A stretch of DNA of 64,000 bases. It comes from Octopus sinensis (lineage: Eukaryota). Every line of letters starts with the position of its first letter. Positions within the stretch are counted from its first letter, which is position 1. Shown piece by piece: positions 2,094-4,402 of this stretch. The stretch lies in NCBI RefSeq assembly GCF_006345805.1, contig NC_043017.1:16616001-16680000 (forward strand). Direction: 5' to 3'. Below the pieces are notes generated by a model, which worked only from the letters and a program-made list of their open reading frames with translations, made no database searches and was not told the DNA's origin. A program made the translations under genes and the position numbers.

Positions 2094-2625
2094 ATATCCT
2101 TTTTTTAACCTTATAAAGAATTATTCAGCTTCTGTGATCATTCTAATCTTTGTGTATTTTACATGGTTCTATAAATAGCTTTTGTCCAGTATCCACTGCC
2201 TTTACGCTTTTACACTTTTACTTGTTTCAGTCATTTGACTGTGGCCATGCTGGAGCACCGCCTTCATTTAAAAAAAAAATTATTTGGAAATATATTGTCT
2301 GTAAATTGAATGTCCTGGACTACAAACTGTATAATCATAAGTTCATATCTCACTACTGTCTTTGTGGTGTTATGCTGTTCTAGATATTTCTAGTTAGTTT
2401 TTTAATTTTCCCTGAATTAAATACGTACCATAATGTGTTAACTGTAGTTTTCATAAAGATGGCATCTCTAAATTATTTAATTTCTTAACAATTCTATTTT
2501 TTCTACATCAACAATCATACCATCTTATACTTAGTGAAGTTTATGTTTTGCTGATGAGGCTGTAATAAAGTATTTTCTAGAAAATGAAAACATTATTTAT
2601 TGACTTATGTTTTTTTCCTTGCCAT

Positions 2626-2786
2626 AGGTGCAAGAGTGTCTGTGCAGTAAGTAGCTTGCTTACCAACCATATGGTTCCAAGTTCAGTCCCACTGCATGGC
2701 ACCTTGGGCAAGTATCTTCTACTATAGCCTCGGGCCGACCCAAAGCCTTGTGAGTGGATTTTTGATAGACAGAAACCTGTTGTATG

Positions 2787-2821
<35 letters not shown>

Positions 2822-3012
2822 TACTGTGTGTCTGTGTTTGTCCCCCATCATTGCTTGACAACTGATGTTGGTGTGTTTATGTCCCTTTAAGTTAGCCGTT
2901 TGGCAAAGGAGACTGATAGAATAAGTACTAGGCTTACAAAGAATAAGTCCTGGGGTCAATTTGACTAAAAGCAGTGCTCCAGCATGGCTGCAGTCAAATG
3001 ACTGAAACAAAC
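2626..3012 (+). mobile_element. tRNA-derived SINE family 2, near full length
   Basis: A/B-box-like head (gtgtctgtgcagtaag...aagttcagtccc), ggcaccttgggcaagt core, internal (TA)n, family-2 tail. Confidence 0.75.
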
Positions 3013-3499
3013 AAATAAAGTCTATTTATTTCCATTTAGCTTTTTTTTAATGTTCCTAATTTCTGTTCCAACATCCAACAGGTTTTATTGCTACGTCATG
3101 GTTGAGTGGTCATCAATAAGAATGGCCCATCCATTACAGCAGAATCGATGTCCTAAAACCACTCAGTTATGCTTGGACATATGTAGCCCTGTCCCTTCCT
3201 CCTCTCTCCCCTGTCTCTAACACATTGGGCACATCCCCCACCCCACTTTTCACATTATCTACTCTTATTTTTCTTAATTTCTGAGGGTAATGTGTCATTT
3301 GATGAAGATCTGGCTGTTGTTTCTAGCAGGTCAAATAGTCACATAGAGGCTTCCTCAAAACTTTTTTATGCAGTAAAGAGCACAGAATGTGTGTGTGGTG
3401 TTGCAATCATTTAGTCCTAGATCAGTAGACCTGTGATTAAAGACATTCCAAACATGACGAGCCCATCTTTTCTTTTGACAACGTCTAGTATTATAGAAG

Positions 3500-3705
3500 G
3501 CAGCGTTAGCACGCTGGGCGAAATGCTTAGCTGTTATGTTCTGAGTTCAAATTCCGGCGAGGTCAACTTTGCCTTTCATCATTTCGGGGTCGATTAAATA
3601 AGTACCAGTTACACACTGGGGTCGATATAATCGACTTAATCCGTTTGTCTGTCCTTGTTTGTCTTCTCTGTGTTTAGCCCCTTGTGGATAGTAAAGAAAT
3701 AAGTA
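3500..3705 (+). mobile_element. tRNA-derived SINE family 1 (Tx1-like tail)
   Basis: B box gagttcaaattcc, body gtcaactttgcctttcatc...ggggtcgat, tail tttgtcttctctgtgtttagccccttgtggatagtaaagaaat; other copies at 21395-21802 and 57500-57727. Confidence 0.8.
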
Positions 3706-3711
3706 TTTTGT

Positions 3712-3860
3712 CTTTACATTAGGAGTTCAAATTCCGCCAAGGTTGACTTTGCCTTTTGGGGTTGATAAATTACGTACCAGTTGTGTACTGGTGTCAATCT
3801 AATCAACTGGCCCCCTCCCCCAAAATTTCAGGCCTTGTGCCTAGAGTAGAAAAGAATGTC
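3712..3860 (+). mobile_element. SINE family-1 body with an alternative 3' tail
   Basis: Same B box and body as 3500-3705, but ends cccccaaaatttcaggccttgtgcctagagtagaaaagaat. Confidence 0.65.
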
Positions 3861-4141
3861 TAGTATTATTATTATTATCTATTGTGTCCTTTTATTGGTA
3901 AAGATGGTAGGGAACAATTTGAAGGAGATTTGGCTAAAATTTGTTACAACTCAAGCAACCGCAAAGAGGTTCTTTTGCTGGTTTGTGTGTACAGAGTTGT
4001 TGCAAGAGGTACAACAAGTGGGTGTTTTGTGTTGGCATCTGCAGAGAAAGCTGTGTAGTTGTAATTCTATTATAATTATAGTTCTGGATCAATATCTTTT
4101 TTTTTTCAGTTAAAGAAATTTGAAATAATTTTTTTTTTTAA

Positions 4142-4362
4142 CCCTTTAGCATTCAGGATCAATCTGTCAAATGTAAAGCCTGTTTAATCACATTGTTTTA
4201 AATTAATTGTACAGCATCTTGTAACTCTGAGATTTTGATGACGTCCCTGTTTATTTTTAGAATGACTTTGTAGGGTAAGTGTGAGAGGTCAGAGCTGGCT
4301 GGTTTGAGCATAAAACAGGAAAACAATTTTGGCCTGGTATGGCCGGTTTAAACACTAAAGGG
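4142..4362. mobile_element. piggyBac-type MITE
   Basis: TTAA|CCCTTTAG ... CTAAAGGG|TTAA, i.e. terminal inverted repeats flanked by TTAA at 4138-4141 and 4363-4366. Confidence 0.7.
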
Positions 4363-4402
4363 TTAAAGCAAAAATTATAAATATTCCTTAATAGCCTCCC
4401 AG

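Follow-up and report, generated by a model that had tools for sequence, protein, structure and literature searches.

How is an intron recognized when none of the possible placements of its ends gives the GT-AG, GC-AG or AT-AC termini that gene-finding programs expect? This question is raised by QTRT2, which encodes queuine tRNA-ribosyltransferase accessory subunit 2 and whose 3' half lies in a stretch of 64,000 nucleotides of Octopus sinensis (assembly GCF_006345805.1, contig NC_043017.1, positions 16,616,001 to 16,680,000 of the forward strand), hereafter referred to as the window. Based on the sequence analysis described here, nucleotides 2094–4402 of the window very probably form a genuine U12-type intron, intron 8 of O. 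sinensis QTRT2, that belongs to the rare AT-AG ('A-type', AT-AN) subclass. The following features define the intron:

2094 to 4402, + strand: QTRT2 intron 8, 2309 nt, phase 2, U12-type with AT-AG termini (as predicted here)
2094 to 2102, + strand: U12-type 5' splice site ATATCCTTT, 9/9 match to RTATCCTTT
4384 to 4392, + strand: branch-point sequence TTCCTTAAT, 9/9 match to TTCCTTRAY, with A4391 as the presumed branch A
4400 to 4402, + strand: 3' splice site CAG, read from the window sequence

The boundary between exon 8 and intron 8 is located at 2093/2094 (...GAT ATA TTC GAC AGT TC/ATATCCTTTTTTTAACC), and the sequence from position 2094 onward, ATATCCTTTTTTT, agrees with the U12 donor consensus RTATCCTTT (PMC1635337) at all nine positions. 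The boundary with exon 9 is located at 4402/4403 (...AAATATTCCTTAATAGCCTCCCAG/ATATCCATATCTTGCCACAG). The distance from A4391 to the final base of the intron, G4402, is 11 nt, which is within the short range expected of U12 introns (optimum 11–13 nt; PMC3584512). The intron lacks a polypyrimidine tract: the branch site is preceded by the A-rich GCAAAAATTATAAATA and followed only by the 10-nt spacer AGCCTCCCAG. A C precedes the terminal AG, as is reported to be typical for AT-AG minor introns of animals (bioRxiv 10.1101/2022.09.24.509304). A first-pass annotation, made from the window alone, had described a perfect U11-type donor, a branch A at 11 nt from the intron end and a terminal AG instead of AC, and each of these elements was found as described.

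The frequency of the motifs in itself does not exceed chance. On the + strand of the window ATATCCTT occurs twice, with 1.9 copies expected (a per-site probability of ~3e-5), and RTATCCTTT occurs once (at 2094), compared to 0.9 copies in shuffled sequences. The weight of the motifs comes from their position exactly at exon ends that are defined by homology. Combining the donor (~3e-5 per site) with the branch motif (~5e-5 per position, over roughly a dozen positions), we estimate the joint chance of finding both at these fixed exon ends at ~1e-8. The motif TTCCTTRAY was present in 5 copies on the + strand (~1.6 expected from shuffles); the additional copies, at 29583, 43212, 47487 and 51021 (all +), are located in repeat-rich sequence and have no U12-type donor nearby.

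The identification of the host gene as QTRT2 is based on sequence comparison at several levels. Window bases 1–9000 are 100% identical to chromosome CM016879.1 of O. sinensis GCA_006345805.1, on which position 1 of the window corresponds to position 16,616,001 (window coordinates equal those of our extracted locus, L008, minus 17981). The QTRT2 exons in the window match, without any difference, RefSeq XP_029649128.1 ('queuine tRNA-ribosyltransferase accessory subunit 2 isoform X1', 402 aa), a protein that in full length matches the Pfam TGT family at 1.8e-73. Exact mapping of this protein onto the genome resolves 11 coding exons and 10 introns, with exons 7–11 located within the window:

29 to 117, + strand: QTRT2 exon 7 (GFVIEGLHRSGVTSESVTTEKMNEVLSHVI), exact mapping of XP_029649128.1, followed by a GT-AG intron
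1993 to 2093, + strand: QTRT2 exon 8, ending ...GAC AGT TC (D-S-S, phase 2), corresponding to human QTRT2 residues 242–275
4403 to 4528, + strand: QTRT2 exon 9 (YPYLATERGAALVFSF...ALSDP-D), from mapping and alignment
7607 to 7732, + strand: QTRT2 exon 10, mapping of XP_029649128.1
8584 to 8704, + strand: QTRT2 exon 11 with the stop codon, mapping of XP_029649128.1

When 1993–2093 is joined to the sequence from 4403 onward, the product (SNLPEDKPRLMQSLWTPAKVLEAVEQGIDIFDSSYPYLATERGAALVFSF...) can be aligned to human and mouse QTRT2 with no gaps (PDB 7nq4_B residues 242–295, E 1e-13), whereas the catalytic subunit QTRT1 is a far poorer match to the spliced peptide (E 0.015–0.05). With only the 76-aa spliced peptide as query, a protein search retrieved no more than a single short open reading frame (ORF) from a metagenome; annotated QTRT2 proteins were found after a search with an alignment seeded from matches in a representative library. 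The assignment to QTRT2 that had been made from the window sequence is in agreement with this alignment, the Pfam match and the identity to the RefSeq protein.

Exon 9 begins with ATATCCATAT at position 4403, and its first six bases, ATATCC, are the same as those at the start of intron 8. As both start with this sequence, the junction can be moved by 0–6 nt while leaving the mRNA identical, resulting in 7 equivalent placements. Their termini are AT-AG, TA-GA, AT-AT, TC-TA, CC-AT, CT-TC and TT-CC, and GT-AG, GC-AG and AT-AC were found in none of the 7. By comparison, each of the nine other QTRT2 introns (10 introns mapped) has exactly one GT-AG placement, and intron 8 has no canonical one. We also enumerated all in-frame, stop-free GT-AG, GC-AG, AT-AC and AT-AG pairs around the site and scored these against orthologues, and the pair 2094/4402 obtained the highest score. 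The repeated ATATCC had been noted in the first-pass annotation as a feature that may lead aligners to misplace the junction. In our comparison, tblastn carries exon 8 on to 2103. In frame, the donor TC/ATATCCTTT (2092–2103) encodes S-Y-P-F and thereby mimics the true S-Y-P-Y encoded across the junction into exon 9 (4401–4412), as a result of which the similarity search over-extends exon 8.

The orthologous site in Octopus bimaculoides, in the independent assembly GCA_001194135.2, reads TTC/ATATCCCTTTTT...TTCCTTAATAGCTTCTCAG/ATATCC, which corresponds to AT-AG termini with the branch A at 11 nt from the intron end. The two octopuses share 96.8%, 100% and 97.5% identity in exons 9, 10 and 11, which contain no indels, whereas the intron sequence is 82–90% identical and does contain indels. 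The reading frame past the junction is therefore constrained, which is sensible only if the 2093/4403 junction is productive.

To place the intron in a wider context, orthologous loci were identified in two ways, through annotated QTRT2 proteins and through a pattern scan of metagenomes for the exon end together with the donor. This yielded 13 orthologous introns (including that of O. sinensis), located at the same codon and in the same phase (following the TC of the second serine of D-S-S), all with a U12-type donor and branch site. Eleven of these are on contigs from outside the two octopuses, representing nine further animals or taxa. The GT-AG state is found in Argonauta hians (GTATCCTTT...TTCCTTAAC, +15), Patella vulgata, Pecten maximus, Branchiostoma belcheri, the contig L035 and a coral-like contig, L017. 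The AT-AG state is found in O. sinensis, O. bimaculoides and two coral-like contigs, L025 and L046, and the AT-AC state in the metazoan contigs L002 (identical in sequence to L003 and L042) and L014 as well as in the coral-like L027 (identical in sequence to L039). The AT-AC introns of L002 (6165–6363) and L014 (344–565) are short, at 199 and 222 nt, respectively. In a BLAST comparison, QTRT2 of L002/L003 and of the other contigs was only ~40–47% identical to each of the named QTRT2 proteins. A coding interpretation of the residues SYPFQ in L002 was rejected, as only the AT-AC model has recognizable splice signals and preserves the length of the protein. No intron is present at this site in vertebrates, where genomic ORF fragments continue through DLFESFFPYQVTERG, nor in the invertebrate contigs L001 and L005. 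Judged by this distribution, the position of the intron is ancient, as it occurs in sequences of cnidarian-like, molluscan and cephalochordate type alike, and several losses of the intron have taken place.

The three terminal states also bear on the history of the octopus intron. Argonauta, which is the nearest relative sampled, carries a GT-AG intron, as do the gastropod, the bivalve and amphioxus; one G>A substitution at +1 is for this reason the most parsimonious origin of the octopus AT-AG form. The ancestral molluscan state was thus most likely a GT-AG U12 intron. A history in which AT-AC changed to AT-AG, as suggested in the first-pass annotation, is not borne out, as Argonauta, Patella and Pecten carry GT-AG U12 introns. 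Among the coral-like contigs, the exon of L017 (GT-AG) is 88–89% identical to the other three, L025 and L046 (AT-AG) are 94–95% identical to L027 (AT-AC), and L025 and L046 are 98% identical to each other. This set fits a series GT-AG to AT-AG to AT-AC, which would represent a complete subtype switch within one clade. AT-AG termini have arisen at least twice at this QTRT2 intron.

Previous studies established that the U11/U12 complex reads the donor and the branch site together, that the 3' splice site is chosen by its distance from the branch (PMC3584512, PMC1635337), and that the final base of the intron can be substituted, in particular in introns beginning with AT (PMC3584512, PMC1635337). 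AT-AG termini are documented for minor introns of humans and other animals (PMC8280824; bioRxiv 10.1101/2022.09.24.509304; PMC1635337; PMC4176328), and the class is rare, as had been stated beforehand for this locus. O. sinensis is reported to retain many minor introns and was part of a genome-wide survey of these (bioRxiv 10.1101/2022.09.24.509304). In the mechanism that we propose for intron 8, the U11/U12 di-snRNP (a pair of small nuclear ribonucleoproteins) would bind jointly to ATATCCTTT at the 5' splice site and to TTCCTTAAT at the branch point, A4391 or its neighbour A4390 would serve as the branch nucleophile, and the CAG located 11 nt downstream of the branch would be picked by distance. 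Joining of ...GAC AGT TC to A TAT CCA... would then produce D-S-S-Y-P-Y. A change from G to A at the first base of the intron would have occurred in the lineage of O. sinensis and O. bimaculoides, leaving an 'intermediate' AT-AG form that would still be functional. From these features we infer that removal of intron 8 depends on the minor spliceosome and that the efficiency of its splicing may be affected by its termini. Rfam and tRNA scans of the whole window were empty, and no small nuclear RNA was found in it.

Several points weigh against this interpretation. The RefSeq protein behind the junction is itself a model, and no octopus transcript contig was found in a search of public assemblies. 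The donor of O. bimaculoides, ATATCCCTT (47166–47174 of locus L007), has a C at +7 and is a weaker match to the U12 consensus than that of O. sinensis. The polarity of the change from GT to AT depends on parsimony over few taxa. Moreover, the AT-AG combination is described as disfavoured and possibly inefficiently spliced (PMC3584512). Inefficient splicing would be expected to lower QTRT2 output, as translation of a transcript that retains intron 8 would stop at the following codon:

2176 to 2178, + strand: first in-frame stop codon (TAG) when intron 8 is retained, from the frame-0 translation, with a product ending in ...DSSYPFFNLIKNYSASVIILIFVYFTWFYK followed by the stop

The alternative that fares best, though we consider it very improbable, concerns RNA editing: ADAR would edit the genomic A at +1 to inosine in the pre-mRNA, so that intron 8 is spliced effectively as a G(I)U-AG U12 intron. 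Coleoid cephalopods show heavy RNA editing and their ADAR is very active. Moreover, A>G editing at the terminal dinucleotide has been found in human NUP210 and CRYZL1, at AT-AG sites that are U12-like (PMC4176328). However, we found no double-stranded structure at the donor by folding, by duplex search or by inverted-repeat search. Exon 8 with 200 nt of the intron had a fold z-score of 0.34, which gives no signal of structure; the best duplex partner of the 5' splice site region anywhere in the pre-mRNA was no better than those of shuffled queries; and no top inverted-repeat arm covers 2080–2110. In addition, the coral-like contigs carry AT-AG termini without any known heavy editing. The wider proposal, that the +1 A is read as inosine or, in a milder version, that the G>A change placed intron 8 in an inefficient, CENATAC-dependent A-type class, is in our estimate a long shot. 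Human A-type minor introns do show a higher basal retention and a selective dependence on CENATAC (PMC8280824). If editing were involved, the expression of QTRT2, and hence the queuosine modification of tRNA, would depend on it; under the milder version, retention of intron 8 would act as a throttle on expression.

Away from the donor, an inverted pair of repeats within the intron could form double-stranded RNA in the pre-mRNA:

2217 to 2272 and 2960 to 3015, + strand: 56-nt inverted repeat in intron 8, with arms that are 84% complementary; copies of a dispersed repeat

Further copies of the same dispersed short repeat are located at 574–797 and 4716–4949.

A second group of alternatives makes use of other splice sites around the same junction, for which the relevant positions are:

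2090 to 2091, + strand: GT near the donor, giving with AG 4393–4394 an out-of-frame truncated product (compare UniProt A0A0L8FI12)
4393 to 4394, + strand: upstream AG in the spacer between branch and 3' splice site, used by a mis-modelled O. bimaculoides transcript
4419 to 4420, + strand: in-phase AC, 18 nt downstream and 29 nt from the branch A, the use of which deletes YPYLAT

It is hardly credible that the major spliceosome removes the intron, using the GT at 2090 or at 2134 with the AG at 4394 and leading to a truncated product or a 15-residue insert. The pair 2134/4394 is in frame, contains no stops and represents the best canonical alternative, but the insert of approximately 15 residues that it generates is present in no orthologue, and the candidate was rejected on these grounds. 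A junction of exactly the 2090/4394 type is carried by the O. bimaculoides protein A0A0L8FI12, but its use in O. sinensis leads to a stop after 23 codons and to the loss of exons 9–11, even though these are 97–100% conserved between the two octopus species. Furthermore, both GT dinucleotides are poor matches to the U1 consensus, and the AG at 4394 is located only 3 nt past the branch A. Both junctions may occur as minor cryptic by-products. Less credible still is a canonical AT-AC U12 intron that makes use of the AC at 4419–4420, resulting in an mRNA without the 18 nt for YPYLAT. This AC is in frame, so that the termini would be canonical, but at 29 nt from the branch A it is beyond the short distances of U12 3' splice sites (optimum 11–13 nt, PMC3584512). 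The 18 nt that would be deleted encode Y-P-Y-x-x-T, which is conserved across Metazoa (orthologue alignments show P, Y and T to be conserved among animals), has the same amino acids in O. bimaculoides and is retained in the RefSeq models. This candidate was likewise rejected.

These comparisons modify part of what the first-pass annotation had put forward about the surroundings of the junction. Its statement that an AC in the right phase is lacking is not strictly correct, given the in-phase AC at 4419–4420, badly placed as this is. Its claim that the only nearby GT lacks an in-frame AG is correct for 2090, which is out of frame with 4394, but not for a second GT, at 2134, which pairs in frame with the AG at 4393–4394.

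Last, an error in assembly or base-calling, with true termini GT-AG or AT-AC and an artefactual A 2094 or G 4402, would fit the rarity of AT-AG and the single-base errors that long-read assemblies do carry, but is next to impossible, since A at +1 and G at -1 are also present at the orthologous site of the independent O. bimaculoides assembly (GCA_001194135.2) and the same combination occurs in the coral-like contigs L025 and L046.

The preferred reading, a U12-type AT-AG intron spliced at 2093/4403, also provides an explanation for the behaviour of gene models at this locus. In the RefSeq models of O. sinensis, O. bimaculoides and Argonauta, the sequence across the junction is correctly given as DIFDSSYPY(L/V)ATERG. 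An older O. bimaculoides model, UniProt A0A0L8FI12 (P0314, 299 aa), ends in DIFDTSQISISSHRKGSSLGFQFSVY and is truncated exactly at intron 8; its end results from splicing of the GT located four bases upstream of the intron to the AG in the branch-to-3' splice site spacer (frame read from the window). The anticipated mis-annotation is thus seen in the older model, and not in the RefSeq model of O. sinensis, in which the junction is right. The QTRT2 models of Sinanodonta woodiana (P0225), Solemya velum (P0234) and Montipora capricornis (P0146) are anomalous from SSYP onward, with a skipped exon or an odd insert. At the level of the proteins, this suggests that an incorrect model of the same intron of U12 type underlies the anomalies in the bivalves and the coral. 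The exon that follows the intron in Patella and in the coral-like contigs starts with (A/T)TATCCTTA, which is itself donor-like. Intron 8 of QTRT2 is a place where gene models fail, because the donor ATATCCTT mimics in frame the S-Y-P-Y/F of the next exon.

Among known systems, intron 8 resembles the A-type (AT-AN) U12 introns described in U12DB, in intronIC surveys and in the CENATAC study, with which it shares the ATATCCTT donor, a TTCCTTAAY branch at ~11 nt from the 3' end, the lack of a polypyrimidine tract and a variable 3' base (here G) following a C. It differs in its host, as in vertebrates, where this intron is absent altogether, QTRT2 is not a minor-intron gene. In our literature search, we found no link of QTRT2 or QTRTD1 to minor introns, which is unsurprising given its absence from vertebrates. 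The introns of A. hians, P. vulgata, P. maximus and B. belcheri resemble that of the octopuses in codon, phase, an xTATCCTT donor and a TCCTTRAY-type branch at 10–15 nt from the 3' end, but have G instead of A as the first base.

The closest precedent is the AT-AG intron of primate ACTR10 (Parada et al., 2014; PMC4176328), a lineage-restricted form that arose from GT-AG via G>A at +1. The octopus intron differs from this in gene and phylum, in the presence of the AT-AG state in two species, and in the occurrence of the same intron with AT-AG and AT-AC termini in other animal lineages. Switching of U12 subtypes between AT-AC and GT-AG was proposed by Burge, Padgett and Sharp in 1998 (as summarized in PMC3584512). 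AT-AG is the single-step intermediate between these canonical subtypes, and the QTRT2 intron shows all three states. Whereas the literature mainly describes a change from AT-AC to GT-AG, with an intermediate that is poorly tolerated, parsimony in the octopuses points to a change from GT-AG to AT-AG, with the intermediate persisting in two species.

As AT-AG minor introns were already known, intron 8 of QTRT2 is a further example, the junction of which is implicit in RefSeq, and it leaves the understanding of the mechanism of minor splicing unchanged. It does add a well-supported natural AT-AG 'intermediate' that is fixed in at least two octopus species, even though reviews call this form disfavoured. 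Together with its orthologues it provides a natural series for studying the course of U12 subtype switches and the degree to which A-type termini are tolerated.

With respect to the remainder of the gene, intron 4 of O. sinensis QTRT2 (position 7868 of L008, upstream of the window) has a donor, GTATCCCATAAC, that is partly U12-like and is the same in O. bimaculoides. With a pyrimidine tract at its 3' end and without TCCTTAAC, it is probably an ordinary U2-type intron. The QTRT2 introns contain microsatellites at 4920–4975, 5797–5940, 8125–8344 and 2783–2821, consisting of (ATG)18.7, (ACAT)n, (GTCT/TCTA)n and (TA)19, respectively.

Beyond QTRT2, the window consists mostly of repeat sequence of the LINE (long interspersed nuclear element) type. 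A stretch of 100 N at 47213–47312 marks an assembly gap. LINE-type retrotransposon ORFs are located at 17163–20515, 26208–27197, 28239–29180 (-) and 63285–63977 (-), with endonuclease/exonuclease/phosphatase, reverse transcriptase and zf-RVT domains.

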